From: Selaginella moellendorffii
Lineage: Eukaryota > Plantae > Lycopodiophyta
Direction of reading: 5' to 3'
Assembly: GCF_000143415.4 (NCBI RefSeq)
Contig: NW_003314282.1
Coordinates: 1,755,374-1,819,373, forward strand
DNA length: 64,000 nucleotides
Shown here: in pieces, positions 3,639-45,663 of the stretch
Position numbering within the stretch: the stretch's first letter is position 1
Layout of the letters: every line of letters begins with the position of its first letter
Program-made: the position numbers and the translations under genes
Notes under the pieces: generated by a model
The model's input: only the letters and a program-made list of their open reading frames with translations
What the model was told of the DNA's origin: nothing
The model's database searches: none

Positions 3639-5117
3639 ATGGAGCGCGGCAAATGGCTGGAGCTCGTGGAATCGTGCGCGGATCTGGCCGAGGCGAGGAG
3701 AATCCACGCGCGCATCCAACCGGTGGTGGCGCCCGACGATCTCTACGCGCGCAACCGGGTGATCGAGATGTTTGGGCGCTCCAGTGGCCCGATTGACGCG
3801 CAGGTGGTCTTCGAATCGATGCCTGCTAAGAACCTCTTCTCGTGGGTTCTCATGATCACGGCGTATGCGAGGAATGGTTGGCTCGAGAGCTCCAGGTCCA
3901 TCTTCGATGCGATGCCCCAGCGGAATCTCGTGGCATGGAATGCTATCGTGGCGGCGTATGCCTCGAATGGGCATCTGGATGGTTCTCAGAGGCTTTTCGA
4001 TGAGATGCCCGAGCGGAACTTGGTTTCCTGGACATCGATTCTTGTCACGTACTCGCAAAAAGGGTGTTACGACGCGGCAAAGCGAGTGTTTGATGAGATG
4101 CCGCAGAGGAATTTGATCTCTTGGACCTCTATGCTTGCAGCAAATGCCAGGAATGGGTATCTGGCAGAAGCCGAAAGAATATTTAGTGCCATGCCCCAGT
4201 GGGATGTGATAGCTTGGAATTGTCTTCTCGCTGTGTATTGCCAAAATCATGATGTTGAGAACGCAAAGAGATTTGTTAGGAATATGGTGGAGTGGGACAT
4301 TACTTCGTGTAATATAATGCTTTTGCTATATGCCCAAGAAGGGCATTTTTGTAAGTGCAACAGATTTTTTTTTAACATGCCGCAGACGGACATAGTGTCT
4401 TGGAACACTTATCTCGCCGTTTGCATGAACTTTCGGAAACTGGAGGAGGCTAAGTTTGTGTTTGATAATATGCCGCAGAGAGATGCATCTTCTTGGTCTT
4501 CCATGATCACAGCATATGCCCAAGAAGGGTATCTTGCAGAGGCGAGGGCGGTTTTTGATTCACTGCCTTTCCAAAGTCCAGTGGGAAGGACGTCAATCAT
4601 GGTTGGCTATGCTCAAGCCGGAAACCTAGATGCCGCTTACAAGATCTTCCAAGAGACACCGCAGCCAGACCTGTTTGCGTGGAATGCAATGCTCGCAATG
4701 TTTGCCCAAGACAGCGAGAAGCAAACCAAAACCAGAGGGATGCTTGACGAGCTCAAACTCACCGACAATCCAGACGAGTTCTGCTTCACGGCAGCGCTGG
4801 TTTCGTGCAGCCACGGCGGGAAGGTTTCTCGAGCAAGGAGCTACTTGGCGTCGATGAGCTGTGACTATGGATTGCCTCCAACCAAGCTCCACTACAGCTG
4901 CATGGTGGATCTCCTGGGACGGGCTGGATATCTCCAAGACGCGCGCGAGCTCATGGAATCCATGCCTTTCACCGCCGAGGCATCGGATTGCATCGGCTTT
5001 GCGGGAGCTTGCAGCAGCCATAGCTCCCGCTTCCACGGATCGAAGCTCGCGCTTGGGTTGGATCCAAGCAACGCAACGGGGCACATCCTCGTCTCGAACA
5101 TCCTGTGCATGGGCTGA
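3639..5117 (+). CDS. PLS-class pentatricopeptide repeat protein with degenerate E domain, no DYW
   Basis: Intronless 492-aa ORF of 31-aa repeats (FDEMPERNLVSW...). Ends with HYSCMVDLLGRAGYL..A..L..SMPF and a degenerate E motif. Confidence 0.92.
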   Translation: MERGKWLELVESCADLAEARRIHARIQPVVAPDDLYARNRVIEMFGRSSGPIDAQVVFESMPAKNLFSWVLMITAYARNGWLESSRSIFDAMPQRNLVAWNAIVAAYASNGHLDGSQRLFDEMPERNLVSWTSILVTYSQKGCYDAAKRVFDEMPQRNLISWTSMLAANARNGYLAEAERIFSAMPQWDVIAWNCLLAVYCQNHDVENAKRFVRNMVEWDITSCNIMLLLYAQEGHFCKCNRFFFNMPQTDIVSWNTYLAVCMNFRKLEEAKFVFDNMPQRDASSWSSMITAYAQEGYLAEARAVFDSLPFQSPVGRTSIMVGYAQAGNLDAAYKIFQETPQPDLFAWNAMLAMFAQDSEKQTKTRGMLDELKLTDNPDEFCFTAALVSCSHGGKVSRARSYLASMSCDYGLPPTKLHYSCMVDLLGRAGYLQDARELMESMPFTAEASDCIGFAGACSSHSSRFHGSKLALGLDPSNATGHILVSNILCMG

Positions 5118-5164
5118 TTGACCTCTTTGACTTGTTTTGACTGGTTTCAGAGGTTCTTCCACGG

Positions 5165-8128
5165 CTAGTCTTCAAGATGAGCTATCAAGTCCATGTAAGT
5201 TTCATTGTCCCTGTTCTTGGACCCCGTGTCAAACCCAAACTTTATAAGCAACCTCACCATCTTTCTGTTTTTCAGGCCCAAGGCAATATCCATGCTTGAG
5301 TATCCGGCTTTCATTCTCGTGTTTGGATTAGCACCGGCCAACAAAATGATCTCAGCAGTCTCAAAGTGGCTCCCGGAAACAGCTCTCATTAGCGGTGTTA
5401 CTGTGACCCATCCTTGGGTGTAGTCCGGGCCATCTACCAGAACACCTTTCTCCAGCAAATGTAATACCACTTCCGAGCTCCCAGCATAAGCAAATCTTTT
5501 CAAGAGCTCTGGTGCCAAAGTTTTCCAGATCCCTGCTTTCTTGGTGATATCTTCAACCTTTTGGATCATCCCTATGCCTGGTTCCCATGATTCTTCCACA
5601 AAACTCCTACCATCTAAGCAAAGCTTTGGGAGCTTTCTCTTGAGTAAACCAATATCAGCCTGTACTACGGCCTTGCAAACGTCGTCGAGAAGACAAGCTT
5701 GTCGGTCTCTCTTAGGTATGACTTCACCATCTGAATCGTCATCGAGATCAGGAAGCTCCTCATTGATCTTTGGCTCTTCCGTGCTTGACGACAGTTCTGA
5801 ATCATCCAATTCTTCATCTTCTTTCCAATCACCTTCGTCTTTTACTCGGTCATTTTCCTCGCCATCTCTTGACTTTTCTGCTGCTCTGAGAAAGTCCACG
5901 ACCTCCAAATTTCCTTGGTCTATAGCAGCCTCTAAAATCTGCTCATGGCCGCTTTGGCTGATCTTCTCCATTGCATATGCAGCCATTTCCTTACTCCCAT
6001 GACCCCCTAAGAGCCTCCACAAGTTGTTCTCGAAGACACTACGATCGTCGTTGCAAAACGAAACCATCATTCGAAATACCTCCTGGCTGTGTGCATTCCC
6101 TTCCTTAGAGCAAGCAAACCTCAGAGGCTCCATTCCACGAAGCCCAGACTCCACCAAGTGACCTCTCAAAAGTGTCAGCACGTATTCATGGTCCCGGAAC
6201 TCGTTCCCAAAGTAATCAAGGCAGCCAAATTCGTGATTCTCAAATCGTTCCAGGACTTTGGGAGAGATCTGTTTCATACTTCCGCCATTGCCTGTCTTGA
6301 GGAAGTAGCTTATCTCGAGAAGGCTCGTTGCAACGCTCAAGCTCCCCTCATGCACAGCACAGTAGAAAAGCTGCTCGAGATAATCTGTGGTGTCCAGGTC
6401 GCGTGGCGTCGTCACAACACCCCCATGCTCGATGAGGAAGAACACTGCTTCGACTTTATGTCCTTGGAGGGCATAGTTGAGTGCTAGAGGTGATTTCCTG
6501 TGTACTGTAGCATTCACGTAGTCATTGATCATGCTTGCCTTGTCTAGCAAAAGCTTCATCATCTCCATCTTTCCGTGGAATGCCAACTTGTGAAACGGCT
6601 TAAGCTGTCCGCTCCTCGGCCAGGTATCGAACTCCATGTTAATATCCTCGAGAAGAACTCGCAAGACTTCCAAGCTATCACCCTCGCATGCGTCGTGCAT
6701 CAGCCATTCTTCCTGCGCAACTATAGCTTGCCACCTTTCGCCCAGAAATTTCAGCACGCCATGGCTCCCTGCTTTGACGCAGATGCGGCATAGTTGAGGC
6801 ACTGCCTTCTTCGGATCAAAGTCCCAGGCTGCCTTGTCAATGATGAACTCTACACCCAGCTTGAAATCCAGCTGGCAAAAGATATCCACCAGCAAAGTTC
6901 CGTGAATGTCCACCATCATGTTCTTGGCTGGTTGCCGAGCTATGGCGTCTGGAACTTCGGGAAACCGCGCTTGAAGAACAGCTAGCATGTCTGTATAATC
7001 CTTGGAACTCGTAAATTCCTCATCCCAGCTGGAAGAACTGACTTTGCCACTGCTGCAAAGGTTGCTATAAGCTGCTCGGATGTGTACTAGGCATTCCTTT
7101 AGAGAAATCCTGTCGTCACGCTCCGCAGAGCAGCAACCATCGACCACGGCAAAGATCTCATCAAAAACACTCTCTTTTAGATCCTCCATGCCTTCTGGAA
7201 CTTGGAGCTCTATAGGAGACCCTCCCATATACTTGTTCATCACCAAGACCGAGTCCATGTACTCGGGTATCTCACCATCTATAATCATTTCCACCAGAAC
7301 CATCCCCAGCGAGTAGACATCCGAAGGGAATGGATTCGCAAGAACTTCCGGAGGGATCTCGTCTACCGCCTCGTCCAGCTCTGGGGAGATCCAAAACGGT
7401 GATCCTCCTAGTGACCTCAGGTAGTCGACATCTTTCTTCCGGAAACTAAACCCAAAATCTATCAGCTTGGGAACCATGAACTCGTCGACCAGCACGTTCT
7501 TGCCTTTCAAATCCCCGTGATAAATACCCCGCTGGTGACAAACCGAGAGCCCAATCACGAGCTCCATGAAGATCTCCAGCTTTCTCTTCCACCAAGACCA
7601 AGAACACGACGATGGCTTCCCGGATCTCAGGAAAGAATTCAAGTCGGGACCTTGGACGAGCTCCATGACAATGCAAACGCTTTGCATTTCCCGGTTGTGT
7701 GTCACACCATAAACGCTTGCAACGTTCCTGGTTCCTTGCAGGATCCGCAGGCTGCTCGCTTCCCTGGTGAGATCTATCACCTCATCGTCGCTGCTGTGAA
7801 TCGTCTTGACAGCCACGCTCACTGTTTCGTTGTCTCCCTCGCTGGGATTTGATCCGCTGCTGGAGGAGTTGTAGTAGTTATACGAGTCGAAAGGGTCGCC
7901 TTCGATGCGTTTGGAGTCCCACACGCCTCTGTAGAGCTTGTGCTGGACGCCATAGCTGCGAGTGATGGTACCTTTGAAGATGCTGCCACAGCCGCCAGCG
8001 CCAATCTCTGTGAGCTTGCTAAACTCGAGCGTTTCCAGTCGATAAGTTTGGGAACTAGTATATAGATTACCAGCTATAGCGTTGTCTCTCTTCCAGGCCA
8101 GCTGGGCGTCCTCGTATCCAGTGCTCAT
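5165..8128 (-). CDS. Intronless protein kinase (non-RD, HGDLKGKN) with C-terminal ankyrin repeats, copy 1
   Basis: 987-aa ORF. Kinase motifs GAGGCG, VAVK, HGDLKGKN, DFG, WISPE, DVYSLG. Ankyrin-like motifs follow (PFHKLAFHG, TPLMRAVSGSHFETAEIILLAGANPN, SSMDIALG..MVRLLIKFG), with an acidic linker. Confidence 0.9.
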   Translation of the reverse strand: MSTGYEDAQLAWKRDNAIAGNLYTSSQTYRLETLEFSKLTEIGAGGCGSIFKGTITRSYGVQHKLYRGVWDSKRIEGDPFDSYNYYNSSSSGSNPSEGDNETVSVAVKTIHSSDDEVIDLTREASSLRILQGTRNVASVYGVTHNREMQSVCIVMELVQGPDLNSFLRSGKPSSCSWSWWKRKLEIFMELVIGLSVCHQRGIYHGDLKGKNVLVDEFMVPKLIDFGFSFRKKDVDYLRSLGGSPFWISPELDEAVDEIPPEVLANPFPSDVYSLGMVLVEMIIDGEIPEYMDSVLVMNKYMGGSPIELQVPEGMEDLKESVFDEIFAVVDGCCSAERDDRISLKECLVHIRAAYSNLCSSGKVSSSSWDEEFTSSKDYTDMLAVLQARFPEVPDAIARQPAKNMMVDIHGTLLVDIFCQLDFKLGVEFIIDKAAWDFDPKKAVPQLCRICVKAGSHGVLKFLGERWQAIVAQEEWLMHDACEGDSLEVLRVLLEDINMEFDTWPRSGQLKPFHKLAFHGKMEMMKLLLDKASMINDYVNATVHRKSPLALNYALQGHKVEAVFFLIEHGGVVTTPRDLDTTDYLEQLFYCAVHEGSLSVATSLLEISYFLKTGNGGSMKQISPKVLERFENHEFGCLDYFGNEFRDHEYVLTLLRGHLVESGLRGMEPLRFACSKEGNAHSQEVFRMMVSFCNDDRSVFENNLWRLLGGHGSKEMAAYAMEKISQSGHEQILEAAIDQGNLEVVDFLRAAEKSRDGEENDRVKDEGDWKEDEELDDSELSSSTEEPKINEELPDLDDDSDGEVIPKRDRQACLLDDVCKAVVQADIGLLKRKLPKLCLDGRSFVEESWEPGIGMIQKVEDITKKAGIWKTLAPELLKRFAYAGSSEVVLHLLEKGVLVDGPDYTQGWVTVTPLMRAVSGSHFETAEIILLAGANPNTRMKAGYSSMDIALGLKNRKMVRLLIKFGFDTGSKNRDNETYMDLIAHLED

Positions 8129-8305
8129 CCTCTAGGAATGAAGTAGGGTTCCTACTCGCCGATGAGATCTAGGAGGAAGAATTCTAACTTTGACATTGCT
8201 TCTTTGACTAGAACTTTGACTAAAGCTTTTGACTAATGTTTGACTGGTTGCAAAGAATGTTGTAGATTCTTCCAGTTCTTCACTAGGGCTCGAAGTAGTT
8301 TCAGG

Positions 8306-10305
8306 ATGGAATCGTCGATGAGAAAGCTCCTGCCAAGCCCGCATCGCCGGACTGGGCTTCTCAAGGATCAGCTCCAACTTGTGCCGAGAAAGGGCGATGG
8401 CGGGCGCGAGGATCGCTATGAGATTGCGCCAATCTCCGACCCCCTCTCCTTCGACAAGGGCTTCTTTCTCTTCATCCGGGCGTGTCAGCTCCTCACGCGC
8501 AAGATGGAAGGAGTGACAATTGTGGTGGGAGTTGCCGGCCCCTCGGGCGCTGGTAAGACCGTCTTCACGGACAAGGTCGCGAGCTTCTTGCCCGGGATTG
8601 CGATCATTTGCATGGACAACTACAACGATTCAAGCCTTGTCATCGACGGGAACTACGATGGTAAGAATCCAAACAAGGTGTGTGTTGTTCTTTGTTCTTT
8701 CGTTTCTATTCGATAGTTTTGGTTGTTTTGCTTTGGTGCTGATAGATCCCAGGATCGTGGACTACGAAATTCTGCTTGACAACATCAAGAGCTTGAGAGC
8801 TGGGAACTCTGCCGACATTCCGATATATGATTTCAAGCTCAGTCGTCGAGTTGGCTATAGGTGAGTTGTCTTTCCTTCCTTTTTGCTAGCATTGGGATCA
8901 AGGACCAAGTATGTTCTTGCGTTGTTTCCAGGCGTCTGGAGCATCCATCGACGAGAATTGTGATCGTGGAAGGGATATATGCTTTGTGTGAGAAGCTACG
9001 TCCATTCCTGGATCTGCGAGTCTCTATAACCGGAGGAGTCCATTTTGATCTCGTCAAGCGGGTTCTCCGTGATATCAATCGCTCCGGCCAAGCTCCGGAA
9101 GACATCATCCACCAGATATCAGAAACGGTGATTTTGTATGTTCTTGTGAACAGCAGTGGTTTCATAATTCTCTCTTTTTCATCTCTTTGTTGTTTTTCGC
9201 ACTTAACTTTGTGTCGTTGCCAGGTTTATCCCATGTACAAGGTGTTCATAGAGCCGGATCTAGCAACAGCACACATCAAAGTAGTCAACAAGTTTAATCC
9301 TTTCTTGGGATTTCAGAGTCCAACTTACATCCTAACGGTTCTGGAGATTCCTTCGTTCTTTCTTTTCTTTTTCTGATTCAAAGTTTTCGATGCTCCAGTC
9401 TTCTCGTCATGTCACGGAAGAAGAGATCAAAGCTGCCATTGGCTCCAAGTTCACTGAAGCAACAGAAGATACTTACGATATCTATCTCTTGCCTCCAGGC
9501 GAAGACCTGGAAACCTGCCAGTCTTATCTTCGCATGAGAAATCGCGATGGAAGATACAGTTTGATCTTCGAGGTCTTTTAGAAAAAATGCTCCATCCAAG
9601 ATCTATCTTTGTCACTTACCATGACCATGTTTCTCATTTTTCTCTAGGAACTTGTGACCGATGAGGATTTTATCATCTCGCCAAGGATCACTTTTGACGT
9701 GAGCGTGAGGCTCTTGGGAGGCCTCATGGCTCTTGGATACGAGATGGCCACCATTATGAAGCGGTCGAGCCGGGTGTTTTGTGACGAGACTGAGAAGATC
9801 GTCGTCAAGATTGACAAGCTCGAGCAAGTCCAGCGAAAGTATGTCCAGGTAGATCCTTTCTTAGCTTTTTTGTTCTTGAGGTTTTTGTATCTCACCAAGT
9901 TTTGACAGATACAAGGCAAAGATCGATCGCTCGTCGCGGATATCGGGAAGAAGCTGGGGCTCGAAGGCTCGTACATTCCACGCTCTTATATAGAACAAAT
10001 ACAACTGGAGAAACTCACTGCCGAAGTAGTGGTATGGAAAAGAATCGACGTGTTCTTCTCATCTCGATCGTCCAAACAGGCATTGCCGGAGGACCTCAAG
10101 AACAAATTAAGCTTGCAAACTACCACTGTTCCGGAAAGTCCAGTTTCATCCAAAACTTATAGCAGAAGGTATGAAGAAATTCTCGTTTTTCCAAGCTCAA
10201 AAACTTCCTTTTTTTCTACAGCTTGAGCTGGAATACCTCGAGGTTTGTCATTTTGTTTTTCTTCCGATCTCCAAAACACTCGATTCACAGAGTTAAGTGT
10301 TTGAT
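8306..10305 (+). pseudogene. 3'-truncated duplicate of TTM (uridine kinase-like + CYTH) gene
   Basis: Same exons as the 14926-17517 gene up to the duplication junction. The last exons (coiled coil and TM anchor) and the intron acceptor AG are missing. Confidence 0.85.
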
Positions 10306-10306
10306 T

Positions 10307-11703
10307 CGGTGGTGTCGCCCGACGGTCTCTACGCGCGCAACCGGGTGATCGAGATGTTTGGGCGCTCCGGTGGCCCGATTGACGCGCAGGTGGTCTTCGA
10401 ATCGATGACTGCTAAGAACCTCTTCTCGTGGGTTCTCATGATCACGACGTATGCAAGGAATGGTTGGCTCGAGAGCTCCAGGTCCATCTTCAATGCGATG
10501 CCCCAGCGGAATCTCGTGGCATGGAATGTTATCGTGGCGTCGTATGCCTCGAATGGGCATCTGGATGGTTCTTAGAGGCTTTTTAATGAGATGCCCGAGC
10601 GGAACTTGGTTTCCTGGACATCGATTCTTGTCACGTACTCGCAAAGCGGGTGTTACAACACGGCTAGGCGAGTGTTTGATGAGATGCCGCAGAGGAATTT
10701 GATCTCCTGGACCTCTATGCTTGCAGCAAATGCCAGGAGTGGGTATCTGGAAGAAGCCGAAAGAATATTTAGTACCATGCCCCAGTTGGATGTGATAGCT
10801 TGGAATTGTCTCCTCGCTGTGTATTGCCAAAATCATGATGTTGAGAACGCAAAGACATTTGTTAGGACTATGGTGGAGTGGGACATTACTTCGTGTAATA
10901 TAATGCTTTTGCTATATGCCCAAGAAGGGCATTTTTGTAAGTGCAACAGATTTTTTTCCGACATGCCGCAGACGGACATGGTGTCTTGGAACACTTATCT
11001 CGCCATTTGCATGAACTTTCGGAAATTGGAGGAGGGTAAGTTCGTGTGTGATAATATGCCGCAGAGAGATGCATCTTCTTGGTCTTTCATGATCACAGCA
11101 TATGCCCAAGAAGGGTATCTTGCAGAAGCGAGGGTGGTTTTTGATTCACTGCCTTTCCAAAATCCAGTAGGAAGGACGTCAATCATGGTTGGTTATGCTC
11201 AAACTGGAAACCTAGATGCCGCTTACAAGATCTTCCAAGAGACACCACAGCGAGACCTGTTTGCATGGAATGCAATGCTCGCAATGTTTGCCCAAGACAG
11301 CGAGAAGCAAACCAAAACCAGAGGGATGCTTGACGAGCTCAAACTCACCGACAATCCAGACGAGTTCTGCTTCACGGCAGCGCTGGTTTCGTGCAGCCAT
11401 GGCGGGAAGGTTTCTCGAGCAAGGAGCTACTTGGCGTTGATGAGCTGTGACTATGGATTGCCTCCAGCCAAGCTCCACTACAGCTGCATGGTGGATCTCC
11501 TGGGACGGGCTGGATATCTCCAAGACGCGCGCGAGCTCATGGAATCCATGCCTTTCACCACCGAGGCATCGGATTGGATCGGCTTTGCGGGAGCTTGCAG
11601 CAGCCATAGCTCCCGCTTCCACGGATCGAAGCTCGCGCTTGGGTTGGATCCAAGCAACGCAACGGGGCACATCCTCGTCTCGAACATCCTGTGCATGGGC
11701 TGA
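10307..11703 (+). pseudogene. 5'-truncated PPR duplicate with premature stop
   Basis: Lacks the first about 27 codons and the promoter of the 3639 copy. CAG->TAG at 10573-10575. The residual ORF 10591-11703 is still open. Confidence 0.85.
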
Positions 11704-11750
11704 TTGACCTCTTTGACTTGTTTTGACTGGTTTCAGAGGTTCTTCCACGG

Positions 11751-14723
11751 CTAGTCTTCAAGATGAGCTATCAAGTCCATGTAAGTTTCATTGTCCCTGT
11801 TCTTGGACCCCGTGTCAAAGCCAAACCTGATAAGCAACCTCACCATCTTTCTGTTGTTCATGCCCAAGGCAATATCCATGCTTGAGTATCCTGCTTTCAT
11901 TCTCGTGTTTGGATTAGCACCGGCCAACAAAATGATCTCAGCAGTCTCAAAGTGGCTCCCGGTAACAGCTCTCATTAGCGGTGTTTCTGTGATCCATCCT
12001 TGTGTGTAGTCCGGGCCATCTACCGGAACACCTTTCTCCAGCAAATGTAATACCATTTCCGAGCTCCCAGCATAAGCAAATCTTTTCAAGAGCTCTGGTG
12101 CCAAAGTTTTCCAGATCCCTGCTTTCTTGGTGATATCTTCAACCTTTTGGATCATCCCTATGCCTGGTTCCCATGATTCTTCCACAAAACTCATACCATC
12201 TAAGCAAAGCTTTGGGAGCTTTCTCTTGAGTAAACCAATATCAGCCTGTACTACAGCCTTGCAAACGTCGTAGAGAAGACAAGCTTGCCGGTCTTTCTTA
12301 GGTATGACTTCACCATCTGAATCGTCATCGAGATCAGGAAGCTCCTCATTGATCTTTGGCTCTTCCGAGCTTGATGACAGTTCTGAATCATCCAATTCTT
12401 CATCTTCTTTCCCATCACCTTCGTCTTTTTCTTGGTCACTTTCCTCGCCATCTCTTGACTTTTCTGCTGCTCTGAGAAAGTCCACAACCTCCAAATTTCC
12501 TTGGTCTATAGCAGCCTCTAAAATCTGCTCATGGCCGCTTTGGCTGATCTTCTCCATTGCATACGCAGCCATTTCCTTACTCCCATGACCCCCTAAGAGC
12601 TTCCACAATTTGTCCTCTAAAACACTACTATCGTCGTTGCAAAACGAAACCATCATTTGAAATACCTCCTGGCAGTGTGCATTCCCTTCCTTAGAGCAAG
12701 CAAACCTCAGAGGCTCCATTCCACGAAGCCCAGACTCCACCAAGTGACCTCTCAAAAGTGCCAGCACGTATTCATGGTCCCGGAACTCGTGCCCAAAGTA
12801 ATCAAGGCAGCCAAATTCGTGATTCTCAAATCGTTCCAAGACTTTGGGAGAGATCTGTTTCATACTTCCGCCATTGCCTGTCTTGAGGAAGTAACTTATC
12901 TCGAGAAGGCTCGTTGCAACGCTCAAGCTCCCCTCATGGACAGCACAGTAGAAAAGCTGCTCGAGATAATCTGTGGTGTCCAGGTTGCGTGGCGTCGTCA
13001 CAACACCCCCATGCTCGATGAGGAAGAACACCGCTTCAACTTTATCTCCTTGGATGGCATAGTTGAGGGGTCTCCTAGCCAGAGGTGGTTTCCTGTGTAC
13101 TGTAGCATTCACATAGTCACCGATCATGCTTGCCTTGTCTAGCAAAAGCTTCATCATCTCCATCTTTCCGTGGAATGCCAACTTGTGAAACGGCTTAAGC
13201 TGTCCGCTCCTTGGCCAGGTATCGAACTCCATGTTGATATCCTCGAGAAGAACTCGCAAGACTTCCAAGCTATCACCCTCGCATGCGTCGTGCATCAGCC
13301 ATTCTTCCTGCGCAACTATAGCTTGCCACCTTTCGCCCAGAAATTTCAGCACGCCATGGCTCCCTGCTTTGACGCAGATGCGGCATAGTTGAGGCACTGC
13401 CTTCTTCGGATCAAAGTCCCAGGCTGCCTTGTCAATGACGAACTCTACGCCCAGCTTGAAATCTAGCTGGCAAAAGAGATCCACCAGCAAAGTTCCCTGA
13501 ATGTCCACCATCATGTTCTTGGCTGGTTGCCGAGCTATGGCGTCTGGAACTTCGGGAAACCGCGCTTGAAGAACAGCTAGCATGTCTGTATAATCCTTGG
13601 AACTCGTAAATTCCTCCTCCCAGCTGGAAGAACTGACTTTGCAACTGCTGCAAAGGTTGCTATAAGCTGCTCGGATGTGTACTAGGCATTCCTTTAGAGA
13701 AATCCTGTCGTCACGCTCCGCAGAGCAACATCCATCGACCACGGCAAAGATCTCATAAAAAACACTCTCTTTTAGATCCTCCATGCCTTCTGGAACTTGG
13801 AGCTCTATAGGAGACCCTCCCATATACTTGTTCATCACCAAGACCGAGTCCATGTACTCGGGTATCTCACCATCTATAATCATTTCCACCAGAACCATCC
13901 CCAGCGAGTAGACATCCGAAGGGAATGGATTCGCAAGAACTTCCGGAGGGATCTCGTCTACCGCCTCGTCCAGCTCTGGGGAGATCCAAAACGGTGATCC
14001 TCCTAGTGACCTCAAGTAGTCGACATCTTTCTTCCGGAAACTAAACCCAAAATCTATCAGCTTGGGAACCATGAACTCGTCGACCAGCACGTTCTTGCCT
14101 TTCAAATCCCCGTGATAAATACCCCGCTGGTGACAAACCGAGAGCCCAATCACGAGCTCCATGAAGATCTCCAGCTTTGTCTTCCACCAAGACCAAGAAC
14201 ACGACGATGGCTTCCCGGATCTCAGGAAAGAATTCAAGTCGGGACCTTGGACGAGCTCCATGACAATGCAAACGCTTTGCATTTCCCGGTTGTGTGTCAC
14301 ACCATAAACGCTTGCAACGTTCCTGGTTCCTTGCAGGATCCGCAGGCTGCTCGCTTCCCTGGTGAGATCTATCACCTCATCGTCGCTGCTGTGAATCGTC
14401 TTGACAGCCACGCTCACCGTTTCGTTGTCTCCCTCGCTGGGATTTGATCCGCTGCTGGAGGAGTTGTAGTAGTTATACGAGTCGAAAGGGCCGCCTTTGA
14501 TGCGTTTGGAGTCCCACACGCCTCTGTAGAGCTTGTGCTGGACGCCATAGCTGCGAGTGATGGTACCTTTGAAGATGGTGCCACAGCCGCCAGCGCCAAT
14601 CTCTGTGAGCTTGCTAAACTCGAGCGTTTCCAGTCGATAAGTTTGGGAACTAGTGTATAGATTACCAGCAATAGCGTTGTCTTCGTTCCAGGCTACCTGG
14701 GCTTCCTCGTATCCAGTGCTCAT
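11751..14723 (-). CDS. Intronless kinase + ankyrin-repeat protein, copy 2
   Basis: 990-aa intact ORF, paralogous to 5165-8128, with the same catalytic motifs. Confidence 0.9.
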   Translation of the reverse strand: MSTGYEEAQVAWNEDNAIAGNLYTSSQTYRLETLEFSKLTEIGAGGCGTIFKGTITRSYGVQHKLYRGVWDSKRIKGGPFDSYNYYNSSSSGSNPSEGDNETVSVAVKTIHSSDDEVIDLTREASSLRILQGTRNVASVYGVTHNREMQSVCIVMELVQGPDLNSFLRSGKPSSCSWSWWKTKLEIFMELVIGLSVCHQRGIYHGDLKGKNVLVDEFMVPKLIDFGFSFRKKDVDYLRSLGGSPFWISPELDEAVDEIPPEVLANPFPSDVYSLGMVLVEMIIDGEIPEYMDSVLVMNKYMGGSPIELQVPEGMEDLKESVFYEIFAVVDGCCSAERDDRISLKECLVHIRAAYSNLCSSCKVSSSSWEEEFTSSKDYTDMLAVLQARFPEVPDAIARQPAKNMMVDIQGTLLVDLFCQLDFKLGVEFVIDKAAWDFDPKKAVPQLCRICVKAGSHGVLKFLGERWQAIVAQEEWLMHDACEGDSLEVLRVLLEDINMEFDTWPRSGQLKPFHKLAFHGKMEMMKLLLDKASMIGDYVNATVHRKPPLARRPLNYAIQGDKVEAVFFLIEHGGVVTTPRNLDTTDYLEQLFYCAVHEGSLSVATSLLEISYFLKTGNGGSMKQISPKVLERFENHEFGCLDYFGHEFRDHEYVLALLRGHLVESGLRGMEPLRFACSKEGNAHCQEVFQMMVSFCNDDSSVLEDKLWKLLGGHGSKEMAAYAMEKISQSGHEQILEAAIDQGNLEVVDFLRAAEKSRDGEESDQEKDEGDGKEDEELDDSELSSSSEEPKINEELPDLDDDSDGEVIPKKDRQACLLYDVCKAVVQADIGLLKRKLPKLCLDGMSFVEESWEPGIGMIQKVEDITKKAGIWKTLAPELLKRFAYAGSSEMVLHLLEKGVPVDGPDYTQGWITETPLMRAVTGSHFETAEIILLAGANPNTRMKAGYSSMDIALGMNNRKMVRLLIRFGFDTGSKNRDNETYMDLIAHLED

Positions 14724-14925
14724 TCCAATCCTCTCGGAATGAAGTAGCCCTAGTTGGTTCCTCCTCGCCGATGAGATCTAGGAAAGTCGCCGCGTGGAAG
14801 AATTCCAACTTTGACATTGCTTCTTTGACTAGAACTTTGACTAAAGCTTTGACTAATGTTTGACTGGTTGCAGAGAATGTTGTAGATTCTTCCAGTTCTT
14901 CACTAGGGCTCGAAGTAGTTTCAGG

Positions 14926-17517
14926 ATGGAATCGTCGATGAGAAAGCTCCTGCCAAGCCCGCATCGCCGGACTGGGCTTCTCAAGGATCAGCTCCAACTT
15001 GTGCCGAGAAAGGGCGATGGCGGCCGCGAGGATCGCTACGAGATTGCGCCAATCTCCGACCCCCTCTCCTTCGACAAGGGCTTCTTTCTCTTCATCCGGG
15101 CGTGTCAGCTCCTCACGCGCAAGATGGAAGGGGTGACAATTGTGGTGGGAGTTGCCGGCCCCTCGGGCGCTGGTAAGACCGTCTTCACGGACAAGGTCGC
15201 GAGCTTCTTGCCCGGGATTGCGATCATTTGCATGGACAACTACAACGATTCCAGCCTTGTCATCGACGGGAACTACGATGGTAAGAATCCAAACAAGGTG
15301 TGTGTTGTTCTTTGTTCTTTCGTTTCTATTCGATAGTTTTGGTTGTTTTGCTTTCGTGCTGATAGATCCCAGGATCGTGGACTACGAAATTCTTCTAGAC
15401 AACATCAAGAGCTTGAGAGCTGGGAACTCTGCCGACATTCCGATATATGACTTCAAGCTCAGTCGTCGAGTTGGCTATAGGTGAGTTGTCTTTCCTTCCT
15501 TTTTGCTCGCATTGGGATCAAGGACCAAGTATGTTCTTGCGTTGTTTCCAGGCGTCTGGAGCATCCATCGACGAGAATTGTGATCGTGGAAGGGATATAT
15601 GCTTTGTGTGAGAAGCTACGTCCATTCCTGGATCTGCGAGTCTCTATAACCGGAGGAGTCCATTTTGATCTCGTCAAGCGGGTTCTCCGTGATATCAATC
15701 GCTCCGGCCAAGCTCCGGAAGACATCATCCACCAGATATCAGAAACGGTGATTTTGTATGTTCTTGTGAACAGCAGTGGTTTCATGTATGTTCTTGTGAA
15801 CAGCAGTGGTTTCATAATTCTCTCTTTTTCATCTCTTTGTTGTTTTTCGCACTTAACTTTGTGTCGTTGCCAGGTTTATCCCATGTACAAGGTGTTCATA
15901 GAGCCGGATCTAGCAACAGCACACATCAAAGTAGTCAACAAGTTTAATCCTTTCTCGGGATTTCAGAGTCCAACTTACATCCTAAAGGTTCTGGAGATTT
16001 CCTTCGTTCTTTCTTTTCCTTTTCTGATTCAAAGTTTTCGATGCTCCAGTCTTCTCGTCATGTCACGGAAGAAGAGATTAAAGCTGCCATTGGCTCCAAG
16101 TTCACTGAAGCAACAGAAGATACTTACGATATCTATCTCTTGCCTCCAGGCGAAGACCCGGAAACTTGCCAGTCTTATCTTCGCATGAGAAATCGCGATG
16201 GAAGATACAGTTTGATCTTCGAGGTCTTTTAGAAAAAATGCTCCTTCCAAGATCTATCTTTGTCACTTACCATGACCATGTTTCTCATTTTTCTCTAGGA
16301 ACTTGTGACCGATGAGGATTTTATCATCTCGCCAAGGATCACTTTTGACGTGAGCGTGAGGCTCTTGGGAGGCCTCATGGCTCTTGGATACGAGATGGCC
16401 ACCATTATGAAGCGGTCGAGCCGGGTGTTTTGTGACGAGACTGAGAAGATCGTCGTCAAGATTGACAAGCTCGAGCAAGTCCAGCGAAAGTATGTCCAGG
16501 TAGATCCTTTCTTAGCTTTTTTGTTCTTGAGGTTTTTGTATCTCACCAAGTTTTGACAGATACAAGGCAAAGATCGATCGCTCGTCGCGGATATCGGGAA
16601 GAAGCTGGGGCTCGAAGGCTCGTACATTCCACGCTCTTATATAGAACAAATACAACTGGAGAAACTCACTGCCGAAGTAGTGGTATGGAAAAGAATCGAC
16701 GTGTTCTTCTCATCTCGATCGTCCAAACAGGCATTGCCGGAGGACCTCAAGAACAAATTAAGCTTGAAAACTACCACTGTTCCGGGAAGTCCAGTTTCAT
16801 CCAAAACTTATAGCAGAAGGTATGAAGAAATTCTCGTTTTTCCAAGCTCAAAAACTTTCTTTTTTTCTACAGCTTGAGCTGGAATACCTCGAGGTTTGTC
16901 ATTTTGTTTTTCTTCAAAACACTCGATTCACAGAGTTAAGTGTTTGATAGCTTGAGAAAGCAGCCGGAAAGAAAGCCTCCACCGCTGAAGATCGAAAACC
17001 TCCAGAGAATTCAAGACGATCGAGGATCGGAGTCTCCGTTGACAGATCAAGTGAGTGATAAAGTTTCCAAAGATCCAACTTTTCTTTTCTTCGCAGGTGT
17101 ATCCTCGTGTTGTCGAGCAACTTGCGAATGTCAATGAAAAACTCGACGAGCTCGTCTCAAGGCTCGCAGAGCTGGAGAAGAAACTAATCACGCCTTCTTC
17201 AGCAGTCCCTATAATCACTCCTCCTCGACGAGTTCCTAGCGGGTCCAACGACGACCAAGTGCTGAGCAACGAGGTAAAGTTCTCTGCGAATAATTTTCAC
17301 CCAAAGTTTCACAAACTTCCAGGTGAGATCTCTTGCTCGAGGCCAGCATGACATGAACACGCAGCTAGATCTCCTCACAAACTTCATCCGCCAGAGGCAA
17401 CTCCTCCCGATCGAGCAAGGTGGTCTAAGCTTGTACCCAAATCCAAAGTTTTTCCTCGTTGGTAGCCTCGCTTTCATTGCCTGTTCATGGTTTCTCGTGA
17501 ACGCGAGAAAGGCTTGA
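14926..17517 (+). CDS. TTM: Triphosphate tunnel metalloenzyme TTM1/TTM2-like (uridine kinase-like P-loop + CYTH domain, C-terminal TM anchor)
   Basis: LSFDKGFFLFIRACQLL, VGVAGPSGAGKTVFT, DLRVSITGGVHFDLVKRVLRD, CQSYLRMRNRDGRY, FIISPRITFDVSVRLLGGLMALGY. C-terminal hydrophobic tail FFLVGSLAFIACSWFLV. Confidence 0.9.
15755..15814 (+). repeat. Exact 30-bp tandem duplication in a TTM intron (copy 2 only)
   Basis: tgtatgttcttgtgaacagcagtggtttca occurs twice; it occurs once at the equivalent position (about 9135) in copy 1. Confidence 0.93.
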
Positions 17518-17596: not shown

Positions 17597-18915
17597 CTAA
17601 GTTCTCAGCCTCTTCTTGGGCTTGGCAACAAAATCTTTGTCTTCTTCGTCCTCGGATTCCTCTCCGCGCTTCGACTTGGCCTTTGTCTTCGCCATTCTTG
17701 AAGCAATAGGAGCGTTGTCTTCATCATCGTCTTCCGACTCTTCTTCCTCTTCGCTCTTCTTCGTAGCCTTGGTTTTCGCAGCTCTCGAAGCAATCGGAGC
17801 GTTGTCTTCATCGTCTTCCTCTGATTCTTCTTCGCTCGTCTTTGCCTTGGACTTGGTTCTAGACATTCTCGAAGCAATAGGAGCATCGTCGTCGTCGGAC
17901 TCTTCTTCCTTCTTGGCCTTGGCTTTGGCTTTCGCACCTCTCGAAGCAACAGGAGCGTTGTCTTCATCGTCTTCCTCAGACTCCTCCTCTTCGCTCTTCT
18001 TTGCCTTGGCCTTCGCTTTCGACTTTGGAGGAGGCTCCTTGTCCTTGGGCTTAGATTTCGACGCAGCAGCCGCGGGCTTCTTGGAGGAGCTTCCATTCGT
18101 TTTAGCAGCAGCACCTTTCACTGGAGTTGACGTCGAGGCACCTTTCACAGGAGTCGATGGCTGCTTGGACTTCTTTTGTTGATTTCGCTTGTCAAAAGCG
18201 GCCTTTGCTTCGTCCTCGGGGAGTAGCCCGTGCTCCATCAACCTGGAACATCATGCTCTAGTTCACAATGAAGAGAGAAAAAATAAAACGTACCAGATCT
18301 CAGCCATCTCACTGGTAGGAATTTGCTCACGAGTGCTCTCGTAAAAAATTCTCAAGGGATCTCTCTGCGAAGGACAACGAGTGACTTATCAGCCAGACGA
18401 TACGAACCCACGCTCACCTCCTCTGGAATCTCATACTTTTGTCCCGGAAGATCGAAAACCTTTTTCTCCCTCACCACTGTTTTCTTCGTCACGATTCTTT
18501 TCTTCACAACTTTCCCAGTCCCCGGCTGTGGAAATCAATGAAAGCATTCTCACTGGATGGCGAAAGCCAAGCGATGGATGACGGAGCTTACCTCTATCAC
18601 CTCCTTGTCCTGGTTCTCGACTTGTTCTTGCACCACCAGCGTCTTTTCCACTCCATTCTCGTGCTCTTGCTTGGCGCTAACTCTCCCCACCATTTCGCTC
18701 ACCTCTTTCTCATTTGGAGCAGCCTTCTTTGTCACAGTCTTGGACACCACCACGGCCTCCACAGCAGGCTCCGCCGGCGCCGCTTCTTCATCCAAATCCT
18801 CCTTCTTCTTCACCGCCTTGGATTCCTTCTTCACCGCCGCCTTGGTCGCTGCCGATCCCTTCTTCGCAGCCGTGGCATCGCTCTTCTTCGCGCCGGCCTC
18901 CTTCTTCGCCTTCAT
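17597..18915 (-). CDS. Lys/Glu-rich protein of unknown function with a conserved plant domain and acidic C-terminal repeats
   Basis: Spliced ORF containing REKKVFDLPGQKYEIPEE-RDPLRIFYES..QIP.SEMAEIW.MEHGLL, flanked by low-complexity K/A/E segments and four EEESEEDDEDNAPIASR repeats. Confidence 0.8.
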
Positions 18916-18982: not shown

Positions 18983-20945
18983 ATGGTGCCATGGCTCGTG
19001 GCTCTCTGCGCGCTCCGCTTCGATGTGGAGCAAGGGCAGGTGATGGACTACTGCTTCCCTCCCGATCGCCTCACCGAGCTCGAGCGATCCCACATCGCGC
19101 TGTGCGCCTTCCCGGATTCGCAGCAGCAGCGCCAGCGGCAGCATTCGTCGCAGCGCACGGCAATCCACGATTCGGTCTTCTTCTTCCGGATCCCGCGTAG
19201 CAGCGGCGCCAAGAATCACAAGCATCTCTTTGGCTACGTCTTCAATCGCCAGCGCCAGGACGAGCGGTTGATCCGGGGCGGCGACCAGAAATCCGTGGTC
19301 ATCCTCTCCTATTTTCCCTACTGGAGCTCCATCTTCAAGCCACTCGTCCAGATCGCCGGCCCTCTCTTCTTCGACAGCGGCAGCGCGGCGCTGGAGAGGA
19401 TCTCCTCGATAATTTCCTCCACCTGGCCGCCGCCACCGCCCAATCCCAAGATCCAGGCCGGATTGGAGCTCCCGGTGGTGAACAACATGGTGATCCGGGT
19501 CGCGAATCTGGCTCCTCTCCCCGATCAAGGTATCGTGTTCCACGATGTGGATCTCTTCGCGGTGCTCAAGGGTGTTTTGATGCAGCTTTGGCTGCTCTGG
19601 GAGCTCGCGCTCGTCGGCGAGCCGCTGCTCGTCGTGGCTCCCTCTCCATCCGTCTCTTGCGAGGCAGTGGCAGCGATCTCCAGCCTGCTAGCTCCGATTC
19701 CATGCAGCTCGGATCTCCGCCCCTACTTCACGATCCACGACCCCGACTTCCACACGGATTTGGCAGCGTCGTCGTCCATCCTTCTCGGCGTCACCAATCT
19801 CTTCTTTCTCCCGGCATTCTCGTCCTCCAAGAGACTCCCCAGCGTCGTCTCCCTCCTCGATCCTCACCACCACCACCACCAGTTCCAGCAGCTCAAGAAG
19901 TTCGTCGACAAGAAGCCGTGGAGTTCTTTGCCTTGGACGCAGCGCCGCCATAGCCAGGCTGTGTGGAGCACCCACGCCCCGGCCACCAAGCCGGACACCT
20001 CGGTTCTCAACAGGCTAGTCGACGCGATTCCATCCTCGCCAAGGATGGACGAATCCATGTCTCTCGTCAACAGTGACATCCTCCGCCGCCACTTCGAGGA
20101 GCTCACCACCAACTTTCTCGCTCCCATCGCGCCATACTTCGCAGTGCCATCTTCTGGATCAAACAATCCTTTCGTTGATCCGCCACCTCTGCCAGCTTTC
20201 GACGAGCAACAGTTCCTGGGCGCGCTGGCGAGCAGGGGTCCCGGGAAGTTTCTGGCCAAGAGGCTTCGTTCCAACTGGATCGACTTGTACAGGTACTTGG
20301 TTCTACAATCTTTCGAAGTTTTTCTCACTCTTGGGTTTGTTCCAACTTTGCCACCAGACGATTCCTCCGTGGCCCAAACTTCATGCCGTGGTTTCGATCC
20401 AGACGTGCAAATGCCGAGAGAGAGCAGCGGCGGATCTGGAGGCAAGCGCGTGCCCGGGCCGACGTGCGGACCATCGTGTCCAAGATGCCCGAGCTGGAGC
20501 TCGTCGAGACTTTCAACGCTATTCTACGCCATCTAGTCGCCGAGCTCGACCTCCAGGTATACACCAGAAGGCTCGAACACCATTTCTAAAAGTTCTCTCT
20601 TCTCTCCAGATGACGCAAACCCCGAGTTTTCCGGAGAAACTCCGGGCCGATTTGCGAGTCGTCTTCGACATGCTACCGAAAGACACCCAGCAATTGCTGC
20701 TGCTGAATCCACAGCACGCATCGCTGCTCGATCCCAAGACGAGCAACAGCAGCGGAATCAGCAGGAGTAGCAGCGGCAGTAGCAGCACCAAGTTGCCCGG
20801 GAGACCGTCAATCCACATATCGTGGTCTTCTCAAGCCACACCCGCGGCACCATTGTCACTTTCGAGGAGGAACAGCCCTTTGGCATTGTCAGGAAGGCTG
20901 GCGCAGGAGCTAGCCAGCGATCCTTTGGACTTGGACAAAGTATAA
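18983..20945 (+). CDS. DENND6-like DENN-domain protein (putative Rab GEF)
   Basis: FDVEQGQ...AFPDS, FGYVFNRQRQDERLIRGGDQKSVVILS, LWELALVGEPLLV, DLRPYFTIHD, LGVTNLFF, LRRHFEELTTNFLAP, NWIDLYR. Two short introns near 20293 and 20557. Confidence 0.88.
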
Positions 20946-21735: not shown

Positions 21736-22935
21736 ATGGATGACGAGTTGTTCTTCGACAGGGAGAGGGAGATGCAGGAGCTGCTGACGCTTTTGGAGGT
21801 GGGTGCCATGCCCAACATGATAGTACTCATCGGCCCCGCCAACTCAGGCAAGAGTGCCCTCCTGCATCGCCTCCAGAGTCTGTGGGAGGCTGATCAACGC
21901 CTCAAGGCCACGATGCCCGTGTTCTATCTCGACATGAGGCTTGCAGACGTGCACACTCCCGCGCTGGCCGCAGCGAAGATTGGCAATCAGCTGCGCACCT
22001 GGCTTTCGTGGTTTTGGAAGCTGGGGACAGCCGCGGCTACGAGCCTGAAGATCACGTTCAAGGGTGTCAGTTCGGATGCAATGAGCCTCGCCAGTGTCCT
22101 CAAGAAGGAGCCACAGTCGGATCTGGCCTCGGTCATGGCCGCCTTCACAGGTTTGGCGTATGCCGACTGTAATATCAGGCCCGTGTTCATCATTGACGAC
22201 GTGGACAAGCTCAAGAGATGGGACGATAAAGATCTGGACGTTCTGCTGCAGGGTTTTGTCGCCATGACCAAACAAGACCATCGAGCCGTGGTCATCATGT
22301 CTACTTCGGACGACTTCTTCCGGCAGTGGTTTCAGGGGCACGTCCATTCGTCACAGTGGACTCCGCTGGGCGTTGGCCACTTCAGCAAGGAGCATGCGAG
22401 GCAGCTCTACTGCAGGCTACTCAGGGAGCGCGAGGTCCAGCAACCAGATGTCACTGATGAGGAGTGGGAGAGGATCTATGCAGTTTGCGGTGGCAGCCCG
22501 CTTGATCTAGCGAACCTCGTCACGGGCGTCTTCAAGCGCAGGAAGCAGATGGAAGCGGTTCTAGACGGCATGGTAGACGCGGCAAAGACTAGCGTGGAGA
22601 CCGGGGCGCAGGCTATCAAGGGAGAACTCGGCTGGGATGGGGCGAAGTTTAAGTCTGTGGCGCGCCTCATCCTGCAGAACAACGGGGCGGTTGGTATTAG
22701 GACTGTCTATCGCAAGGCATTCGGTGGTGACGTGAATGAGGCCCGAGCACAGCTTCAAGCAATGATCAAGGCCAATGTGATCCATGTCAGGTATGCACCG
22801 GCCGACGTTTCCTACGATGACCTTCACAGGGGTAATGACAAGAGCAAGGACTTCGTCATGGCCATATCCCCTCCGCAGCTCGTCGCCATGAGGGTGTACC
22901 TGGAAGAGGAAGAGGAAGAAGAAGCATTGCCATGA
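21736..22935 (+). CDS. P-loop NTPase of ATPase_2/AAA_16 (archaeal-type, STAND-related) family
   Basis: FFDREREM N-terminal motif, Walker A GPANSGKS, Walker B FIIDDVD, sensor region VVIMSTS, GGSPLDL (GxP-like). A possible upstream exon joins in frame via a GT-AG intron at 21657-21708. Confidence 0.8.
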   Translation: MDDELFFDREREMQELLTLLEVGAMPNMIVLIGPANSGKSALLHRLQSLWEADQRLKATMPVFYLDMRLADVHTPALAAAKIGNQLRTWLSWFWKLGTAAATSLKITFKGVSSDAMSLASVLKKEPQSDLASVMAAFTGLAYADCNIRPVFIIDDVDKLKRWDDKDLDVLLQGFVAMTKQDHRAVVIMSTSDDFFRQWFQGHVHSSQWTPLGVGHFSKEHARQLYCRLLREREVQQPDVTDEEWERIYAVCGGSPLDLANLVTGVFKRRKQMEAVLDGMVDAAKTSVETGAQAIKGELGWDGAKFKSVARLILQNNGAVGIRTVYRKAFGGDVNEARAQLQAMIKANVIHVRYAPADVSYDDLHRGNDKSKDFVMAISPPQLVAMRVYLEEEEEEEALP

Positions 22936-44799: not shown

Positions 44800-45663
44800 A
44801 TGAATATTTTATTTTTTATTTTTATACTTTTTAGTAATAATAATAATAATACATGTTCTGGAGTAAATTATTTATATCAAAGACAACAAAACGCACTATT
44901 ACTTCATCAAAGGATTGAAGTGATGGGTTTAACTCTTGGGTTAATAAGAACTTTAGGATTTCATACAATATATAATTCAGGTACAACAATTACTGGAGCA
45001 AGTATAATAAGTGGAGGAAGAAGAATCACTGTAAGGCTATGGTTTGCAAGAGCAAGAACTTGTGAGCTTAATCCTACAGGACTTCAAATTGAAGGACATG
45101 TATTACAAAACTTTTTAATGATTATATTCAATGTGATTGTTGATAATGTAAGGATTAATGGGTATGGAAGTTTGTTTGCAACATATGGAAATTTTGGTAT
45201 TGATTATTTCATGAATGCATTTGGTTCTTCATCATTTATATTAGTAGAAATAAATAAAATTCTATATATTAATGATTGTGACTTTAGAGTGAATAACCTT
45301 ATTAGTGGACCAATAGGTCCAGAGTCAATTTTATTACCTTATAAATCAATTTATTCTTCTAATAATAAATTTCTATTTACATTTTCAAGTAAGTGTCAAT
45401 TGCAACTTAAAGATGAATACTATAATATTATCTGGACAAGCATTAGTTATTGCCTTAATGAAGATGGATATTTTCTTTCTTTACAAGTTGATGGGAATTT
45501 ACTAATACAACACATCTTTCATAAATCAATTTTATGGGCATTAAATCTTTATTGTCAACCACAACCAAATTGTGTTCTTTCATCTGCTCTAGTTGTAAGA
45601 AACGATGGGAAACTTGTTCTCTATAGAACAGATACACAAGAAATTGTATGGATAAAACCATAA
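44800..45663 (+). CDS. Putative secreted protein: unknown N-terminal domain + bulb-type (B) lectin domain
   Basis: Hydrophobic N-terminus. C-terminal SIYSSNNKFLFTF..CQLQL..IIWTS, LSLQVDGNLLI, LVVRNDGKLVLY..IVW are typical of B-lectin. Intronless and very AT-rich. Confidence 0.7.
   Translation: MNILFFIFILFSNNNNNTCSGVNYLYQRQQNALLLHQRIEVMGLTLGLIRTLGFHTIYNSGTTITGASIISGGRRITVRLWFARARTCELNPTGLQIEGHVLQNFLMIIFNVIVDNVRINGYGSLFATYGNFGIDYFMNAFGSSSFILVEINKILYINDCDFRVNNLISGPIGPESILLPYKSIYSSNNKFLFTFSSKCQLQLKDEYYNIIWTSISYCLNEDGYFLSLQVDGNLLIQHIFHKSILWALNLYCQPQPNCVLSSALVVRNDGKLVLYRTDTQEIVWIKP

Follow-up and report, generated by a model that had tools for sequence, protein, structure and literature searches.

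We describe an uncharacterised orphan family of non-RD kinase-ankyrin proteins of non-seed land plants, two genes of which lie in tandem in the genome of the lycophyte Selaginella moellendorffii. The stretch of DNA analysed (hereafter the window) comprises 64,000 nucleotides (assembly GCF_000143415.4, contig NW_003314282.1, positions 1,755,374 to 1,819,373 of the forward strand), and all coordinates below count from its first letter unless a locus is named. Within the window, the range 5165-14723 consists of two tandem paralogous open reading frames (ORFs), both on the minus strand, each encoding a protein kinase followed by ankyrin repeats. Proteins that join a kinase to ankyrin repeats are as such already known. 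We put the probability at about 0.75 that the two genes belong to an old, small and nearly intronless family of land plants represented in ferns, in both lycophyte lines and, among bryophytes, in liverworts and mosses. Seed plants appear either to have lost the family or never to have retained it. We found no description of it in the literature searched, and its members bear only "uncharacterized" or "hypothetical" names.

Copy A (5165-8128, minus strand) is an intronless coding sequence of 987 amino acids, recognised from its ORF and translation, from Pfam kinase and ankyrin matches and from RNA contigs. Copy B (11751-14723, minus strand), recognised from its ORF, translation and Pfam matches, is an intact coding sequence of 990 amino acids. 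An earlier note, made from the letters of this DNA, had described an intronless kinase gene at 5165-14723; the ORFs are real, and the range in fact spans two tandem paralogues, which the note did not mention. The two proteins are 95.3% identical, and their 47 differing alignment columns consist of 44 substitutions and a 3-residue indel. The ratio of nonsynonymous to synonymous divergence (dN/dS) is 0.42 at a dS of 0.047, indicating that both copies are under somewhat relaxed purifying selection.

Copy A is transcribed and unspliced. RNA contigs from 4 runs in 4 studies tile positions 5165-8138, which begin at the stop codon and extend 10 nt beyond the ATG on its upstream side. The tiling contains no joints, and each long piece has 0-2 mismatches (for example, 2 mismatches in the piece covering 6660-8138). 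Contigs from the same runs cross GT..AG joints in the neighboring spliced gene (8659/8745, 8858/8930 and 9126/9223). These joints establish that the contigs derive from RNA, and thus that copy A is transcribed and lacks introns. A single-exon coding sequence is also found for the relatives LOC9635275 of S. moellendorffii and those of Diphasiastrum and Ceratodon; in the Riccia gene the only interruption is an in-frame, annotated gap of 180 nt.

The kinase is active-looking, and we predict it to be a catalytically competent enzyme of Ser/Thr type. In copy A the domain occupies approximately residues 36-350 (7079-8023, minus strand), and the GxGxxG, VAVK, HGDLKGKN, DFG and SPE motifs are all present. 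Pfam Pkinase matches residues 97-349 of both copies with an E-value of 3e-27; a frame of 987 codons with such Pfam scores is far past chance. The Gly loop is formed by G43-x-G45-x-x-G48 and the VAVK motif by residues 105-108, and we identified K108, E123, D206, K208, N211, D224-F-G, E250 (of SPE), D270 and R340 as the remaining catalytic residues. Thus, the features by which eukaryotic kinases are recognised (G loop, beta3 Lys, alphaC Glu, catalytic Asp and Asn, DFG Asp and APE Glu) were all found. In an alignment of 9 family members (alignment A1), every catalytic residue listed except G43 was invariant, and an alignment of 7 kinase domains (alignment A2) gave the same picture of conservation.

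The catalytic loop, HGDLKGKN, lies at residues 204-211 (7496-7519, minus strand; read from the translation). Its residues H204, G205, D206, L207, K208, G209 and N211 are invariant in alignment A1. As the glycine that takes the place of the HRD arginine never varies, this is a true non-RD family. Between beta2 and beta3 the kinase carries a disordered insert of 48 residues (54-101; 7826-7969, minus strand), delimited from alignment A1 and modeled by AlphaFold with a pLDDT (predicted local distance difference test) below 50 at 57-101. The length of this insert varies across the family.

C-terminal to the kinase are two blocks of helical repeats. Pfam ankyrin families match residues 477-570 and 862-981 of both copies (Ank_2 with an E-value of 6e-18; Ank_4, Ank and Ank_5 above their cut-offs). 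Block 1 (residues 413-755; 5864-6892, minus strand) was delimited from Pfam Ank_2 and Ank_4, the AlphaFold model, in which its pLDDT is mostly 70-90, and Foldseek; it comprises about 10 helix pairs in the model, with canonical ankyrin repeats at 477-570. An acidic, Ser-rich linker follows (residues 756-808; 5705-5863, minus strand), seen in the translation and predicted to be disordered (pLDDT below 50 at 755-808). Block 2 (residues 809-987; 5168-5704, minus strand) is marked by Pfam Ank_5, Ank and Ank_KRIT1 at 862-981 and by conserved columns of alignment A1. In the model it consists of about 5 helix pairs, and these C-terminal ankyrin repeats form the best-conserved tail of the family. The AlphaFold model, built on 9 sequences (mean pLDDT 65), predicts kinase and helical-repeat folds only. 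When it was compared with known structures by Foldseek, the best match was a 24-repeat ankyrin-B structure, and kinase domains came next. Both signs of ankyrin-repeat membership, Pfam Ank families and a solenoid of helical pairs in the model, are therefore present.

Much of what the earlier note had read from the letters is borne out by these data. It had described an intronless gene, and copy A is covered by RNA contigs that contain no splice joints. It had named an N-terminal non-RD kinase with HGDLKGKN, which lies at residues 204-211 with G205 invariant in all nine members. The insert of about 40 amino acids that it had noticed between the Gly loop and VAVK measures 48 residues (54-101), a net insertion of about 40. 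The order of kinase and then a long ankyrin-like tail agrees with the Pfam coordinates in both copies.

We searched for relatives with both word-based and profile methods. In the databases, LOC112343566 and LOC9635275, both of S. moellendorffii, are the nearest proteins. In a word-index search, full-length relatives aligned with 89-100% of the query, with BLASTP identities of 30-41%. The sequences returned were LOC9635275, a Pteridium aquilinum transcript, Ceratodon purpureus KC19_5G026100, Riccia sorocarpa R1sor_023912 and two further sequences, one of which covers 52% of the query. Beyond these family relatives, E-values in the same search fall to 1e-10, and the matches are bacterial kinases that align with 12-28% of the query length. 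Using only the kinase or only the C-terminal 637 amino acids as the query of a word search brought up no additional relatives. An exhaustive profile search of 1.84 billion representatives returned about 13 family clusters; the rest of the best 150 matches were giant ankyrin proteins, which were matched through the repeat part only. Among named species, this search added Diphasiastrum complanatum and two more Pteridium transcripts. The proteins of LOC9635275, Ceratodon, Riccia, Diphasiastrum and Pteridium all have the same layout, with 30-47% identity over 89-100% of the length. All named family clusters come from non-seed land plants, and the remaining clusters are Logan and JGI sequences. A metagenome scan with alignment A1 confirmed no family locus; a scan with a bryophyte-weighted alignment (A3) yielded five.

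No seed plant, alga, fungus or animal was present among the full-length profile matches listed from the 1.84 billion representatives, all of which scored at least 309 bits, and neither the word searches nor the profile search produced a seed-plant member of the family. Family members left out of the profile, for comparison, reached 650-865 bits, and a fragment comprising the kinase only reached 466. As these values are well over 309 bits, a seed-plant orthologue should have shown. The earlier note had named, as grounds against its own reading, orthologues of the same architecture that were widespread in land plants and nested within a known plant kinase family. Such orthologues proved to be widespread in non-seed land plants, but in the searches they did not fall within a known plant kinase family.

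To place the members relative to one another, we built a careful tree of 17 rows and a quick tree of 22 rows, both midpoint-rooted without an outgroup. The Pteridium sequence P0003 grouped with the Selaginella genes (support 100/100), Diphasiastrum grouped with Riccia (100/100), and a separate moss-type clade was formed by Ceratodon, Logan sequences and the five JGI metagenome loci. That a lycophyte groups with a liverwort speaks for old paralogues and their differential loss within an ancient, vertically inherited family, rather than for recent transfer.

The earlier note had proposed a lineage-specific or horizontally acquired sensor-kinase. A sensor role would be conjectural, the folds predicted in the model being those of a kinase and of helical repeats. 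A gene confined to Selaginella or obtained by transfer, for example from fungi or bacteria, would account for the absence of introns, for the lack of algal or seed-plant relatives among the profile matches listed, and for the fact that, outside the family, the best word-search matches to the kinase are bacterial Ser/Thr kinases (E-values of 1e-10 to 4e-12). However, identity in these bacterial matches is 28-38%, and they span 12-28% of the full-length query or at most 50% of the query made of the kinase alone, as expected of a similarity common to kinases in general. Among the profile matches listed, none from outside plants was full-length, and no donor-like non-plant relative emerged. Moreover, the same architecture occurs in a liverwort, a moss, two lycophyte lines and a fern, with 30-47% identity and deep subclades, and the flanking PPR and PRK/CYTH genes are ordinary plant genes. 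We therefore consider this proposal very improbable, and a recent horizontal transfer was rejected on the grounds of the land-plant range and the lack of a non-plant full-length relative. An ancient transfer, received by the common ancestor of land plants, is conceivable, although the searches revealed no donor for it. Together, the sequences indicate vertical inheritance with recent duplication in Selaginella, and no horizontal transfer is detectable in them.

Several observations weigh against reading these genes as an ancient land-plant family with an active kinase. The profile list ends at 309 bits, among the giant ankyrin proteins, and more remote, kinase-only kin in seed plants or algae could be hidden below that score. 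Several members come from Logan or JGI contigs, to which we assign a plant origin on the basis of the tree and of flanks that are rich in AT and poor in genes. The fern members derive from a transcriptome and could be contaminants. The model of the kinase is of moderate confidence (mean pLDDT 65).

We also asked to which kinase group the domain belongs, comparing it with solved structures in the PDB and examining the best 60 of 843 matches to the single sequence and the best 60 of 812 matches to the family profile. The nearest chains to the single sequence were TNIK, MAP4K4 and MINK1 (E-value of 1e-17; 3e-24 with the family profile). With the profile, TNIK scored 88.7 bits, B-Raf 82.9 (over the whole domain), MAP4K4 78.5 and AMPK 74.6. 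In Pfam, PK_Tyr_Ser-Thr scored 89.8 versus 96.1 for Pkinase. The near-equal scores of TNIK, B-Raf, MAP4K4 and AMPK assign the domain to no clear kinase group, and for this reason an assignment to TKL or STE was dropped. The earlier note had linked HGDLKG to fungal TKL-type kinases; this link found no support, the best matches being the STE20-type TNIK and MAP4K4 with B-Raf and AMPK close behind.

These comparisons bear on whether the family could be a rearranged plant ankyrin-kinase. In plant integrin-linked kinases (ILKs), the ankyrin repeats are N-terminal to the kinase. If the family descended from such a protein (ILK / Raf-like C1, of the TKL group), the ankyrin block would have shifted to the C-terminus. 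Such a descent would fit the alignment of B-Raf kinase domains, which extends through the entire domain and scores 83 bits, near the best match. It would also fit the PK_Tyr_Ser-Thr score of 89.8, which lies near the 96.1 of Pkinase. Yet TNIK scores higher (88.7 bits) and AMPK is near (74.6), leaving no group signal, and the kinase-only search found no plant kinase nearer than an E-value of 4e-12. The domain order is the opposite one, and we found no counterpart for the family-specific middle region or for the beta2-beta3 insert. We regard a rearranged ILK as improbable.

How might such a protein work? As expected of non-RD kinases, the kinase would be active without charge neutralisation of its activation loop. 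The ankyrin blocks may dock a substrate or a regulator, and the kinase would then act on the docked partner. With docking of this kind, activity would be set by the bound partner and not by a ligand-binding ectodomain. The protein is probably cytosolic, as we infer. Judged by gene neighborhood in bryophytes, the likeliest partners would be MLKL-like pseudokinases or other immune or cell-death proteins, an identification that we offer tentatively.

The neighborhoods in question are as follows. In Riccia, a gene encoding an MLKL_N domain and a pseudokinase (L012:19326-20795; CM100800.1) lies 5.4 kb downstream of family member P0007 on the same strand. Its MLKL_N domain scores 35.6 bits (cut-off 27), HRK replaces HRD, the DFG Asp is missing, and there is a weak RPW8 match. 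On metagenome contig L018, an MLKL-like gene (L018:21290-22662, minus strand) is located 8.6 kb from the family gene. It looks complete, in two adjoining frames, and matches the Riccia protein with a tblastn E-value of 5e-92 and MLKL_N with 28.2 bits (cut-off 27). On contigs L016 and L017, which carry the same gene, an MLKL_N ORF is found 3.9 kb from the family gene (L017:7671-8165, minus strand; L016:12981-13334, minus strand). The L018, L016 and L017 contigs are AT-rich and eukaryotic and belong to the moss-type clade. Family member P0224, at L004/L005, is followed 0.7-3.1 kb downstream by a degenerate MLKL-like kinase lobe. Loci L015 and L019 have no MLKL-like neighbor. Altogether, an MLKL-like neighbor is present at 4 of about 10 distinct family loci and absent at 6, a raw count with no chance baseline. 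As a separate observation, the family member of Ceratodon purpureus is followed on its own strand, 1.3 kb downstream, by a TIR-NB-ARC-LRR immune-receptor gene (L014:14856-19046; CM026425.1).

The linkage is suggestive of an old functional pairing of kinase-ankyrin and MLKL-like genes. It would fit a RIPK/MLKL-like module, which would extend the reading of the genes as an ancient family by making that family the upstream kinase of MLKL-like executioners in non-seed plants. In such a module, the ankyrin blocks would bind an MLKL-like pseudokinase and the kinase would phosphorylate it, freeing the four-helix-bundle head for membrane damage or immune signaling. The Selaginella copies would have MLKL-like partners encoded at unlinked loci and would act on them in trans. 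The MLKL-like genes near family members in Riccia, L018 and L016/L017 and the remnant at L004/L005 are consistent with this module, as is the position of the linked loci on both sides of the midpoint root. In addition, a plant MLKL family has been described in seed plants, with activity that reportedly depends in part on phosphorylation of the activation loop (bioRxiv 10.1101/681015).

Other data speak against a module of this type. The loci that have no MLKL-like neighbor include the window itself, as a tblastn search of its 64 kb with the Riccia MLKL-like protein gave no match. There is likewise no MLKL-like gene in the 10 kb on either side of LOC9635275, or within 10 kb of the Diphasiastrum and Ceratodon genes. 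A single genome may have supplied the moss-type loci L015-L019 as paralogues, in which case they would not be independent. RIPK1-4 are not among the best 60 of the 812 PDB matches to the family profile. We thus see the module as possible, and well short of probable. A broader scenario, in which the first land plants had an ancient two-gene, necroptosis-like immune switch, with the family as the activating kinase docked through its ankyrin repeats onto an MLKL_N pseudokinase, and in which this switch stayed linked in liverworts and mosses, became unlinked and duplicated in Selaginella, and was lost in seed plants, would be somewhat less likely still.

In the window, each kinase-ankyrin gene is part of a larger duplicated unit. 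Unit 1 (3721-10306) contains a PPR gene, copy A and a PRK/CYTH gene, and unit 2 (10307-16851) contains a shorter PPR gene, copy B and a PRK/CYTH gene. The units were recognised from direct repeats, spaced 6586-6651 nt, and by blastn. They are arranged head-to-tail, measure about 6.6 kb each and are 96.8-99.1% identical in nucleotide sequence by blastn. In each unit the PPR gene is convergent with the kinase-ankyrin gene and the spliced PRK/CYTH gene is divergent from it. The same array is present in the v1 assembly, on scaffold GL377729.1 (locus L013). One L013 copy is intact, with a continuous frame (L013:10069-13032) that is 96% identical to copy B. The NCBI model of this copy, LOC112343566 (L013:10001-13035), has its N-terminus, including the Gly loop, replaced by way of a predicted intron despite the continuous frame. 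In the L013 copy at the A position (L013:16059-19017) the frame is broken near codon 309, and the annotation gives this copy as a kinase of 339 amino acids.

Arrays of this kind could also hold functionless duplicates in decay, the birth-and-death products of local tandem duplication. The recent date of the duplication (dS 0.047), the shortened second PPR copy and the frame break near codon 309 of the v1 copy in the A position are what one would expect of decay. Set against them are two window copies that are intact over about 990 codons, a dN/dS of 0.42 rather than 1, the transcription of copy A, and catalytic residues conserved across the land-plant range of the family. The divergence that this range spans is roughly 450 million years. 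We find it hardly credible that the copies are decaying, and pseudogene status was rejected on the intact copies, the dN/dS of 0.42 and the transcription of copy A.

The PPR gene convergent with copy A (3639-5117, plus strand; 492 amino acids) was identified by its Pfam PPR match (E-value of 6e-60). Its stop codon and that of copy A are separated by 47 nt, and RNA contigs span both 3′ ends. The PPR copy of unit 2 (10591-11703, 370 amino acids) is shorter than this unit 1 copy (3639-5117, 492 amino acids). Divergent from copy A is a spliced gene that encodes a P-loop PRK/uridine-kinase-like domain and a CYTH domain (8286-10200, plus strand), recognised from RNA joints and from a P-loop motif in the ORF; the CYTH domain was assigned by homology to an L013 gene annotated PRK+CYTH. 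RNA contigs define introns at 8660-8744, 8859-8929 and 9127-9222 and an alternative 5′ splice site at 8675/8676. The word depth of the RNA contigs is greater over this gene than over the kinase gene. The second PRK/CYTH copy lies at about 14900-16850.

Other features of the window lie beyond the duplicated units. Just past unit 2, at 17643-18021, lie three direct repeats in degenerate form, each about 136 nt long and 65-72% identical. An ORF of 517 amino acids (18983-20536, plus strand), located where the GC content of the window is highest (0.57), matched no Pfam family at an E-value of 0.001 and gave chance-level matches at about 0.01-0.04. About 7 kb from copy B, an ORF of 399 amino acids (21736-22935, plus strand) encodes a STAND-type ATPase domain (ATPase_2, E-value of 4e-20; NACHT, 2e-8; weak NB-ARC). 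The segment 44001-46000 is very AT-rich (GC 0.29) and contains a 287-amino-acid ORF (44800-45663) with a weak bulb-lectin match (E-value of 4e-4, under the Pfam cut-off).

The family constitutes an orphan branch of the plant kinome that has been kept in every major non-seed land-plant line sampled and that is invisible to work on angiosperm models. We know of no upstream kinase of plant MLKLs, and the recurrent MLKL-like neighbors in bryophytes suggest a concrete candidate, open to test, for the activation of plant MLKL-like proteins. If the MLKL link fails, an ancient gene-family loss and a recent tandem duplication would still stand. The case for a RIPK/MLKL-like switch comes from gene neighborhood in other species only.

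Comparison with known systems places the family beside several groups of kinases. The STE20 kinases of the GCK-IV class (TNIK, MAP4K4 and MINK1) are its best solved-structure matches: their HRDIKGQN aligns with HGDLKGKN and their GTPYWMAPE with GSPFWISPE, the form in which the family partly keeps the STE20 signature GTPxWMAPE. The match spans residues 105-282 only and lies about 6 bits above B-Raf, and neither the CNH domain of those kinases nor the ankyrin blocks of this family have a counterpart on the other side; membership in GCK-IV would thus be tentative.

Previously described plant ankyrin-kinases are the ILKs (ILK / Raf-like C1; PMC5376563). Like these cytosolic kinases, the family joins a plant kinase, probably cytosolic too, to ankyrin repeats and has B-Raf-type domains among its good matches. 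The differences are the reversed domain order and the occurrence of ILKs in seed plants, where this family was not found; the kinase-only search detected no close sequence relation between the two. Like the vertebrate RIPK3-MLKL necroptosis pair and plant MLKLs, the bryophyte loci pair an active-looking kinase gene with a gene for an MLKL_N four-helix bundle and a pseudokinase. RIPK3, in contrast, uses a RHIM and not ankyrin repeats, and the plant MLKL family of bioRxiv 10.1101/681015 was described for seed plants, in which the kinase family was not found.

The layout matches that of animal RIPK4 and ANKK1, which also have an N-terminal kinase and a C-terminal ankyrin block. Clusters of like domain composition (Chlorophyta proteins with kinase and ankyrin domains, RIPK4 and ANKK1) or generic kinases are also its neighbors in a language-model atlas, which we treat as leads only. 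The family differs from RIPK4 and ANKK1 by its HGD motif where HRD is expected, by the insert between beta2 and beta3 and by the arrangement of about 15 helix pairs in two repeat blocks. No kinship in sequence was detected, and no animal protein was among the full-length profile matches listed. RIPK chains were likewise missing from both the best 60 of 843 and the best 60 of 812 PDB matches, and the likeness to RIPK is thus one of analogy. The resemblance to RIPK4 and ANKK1 is best read as a convergent architecture.

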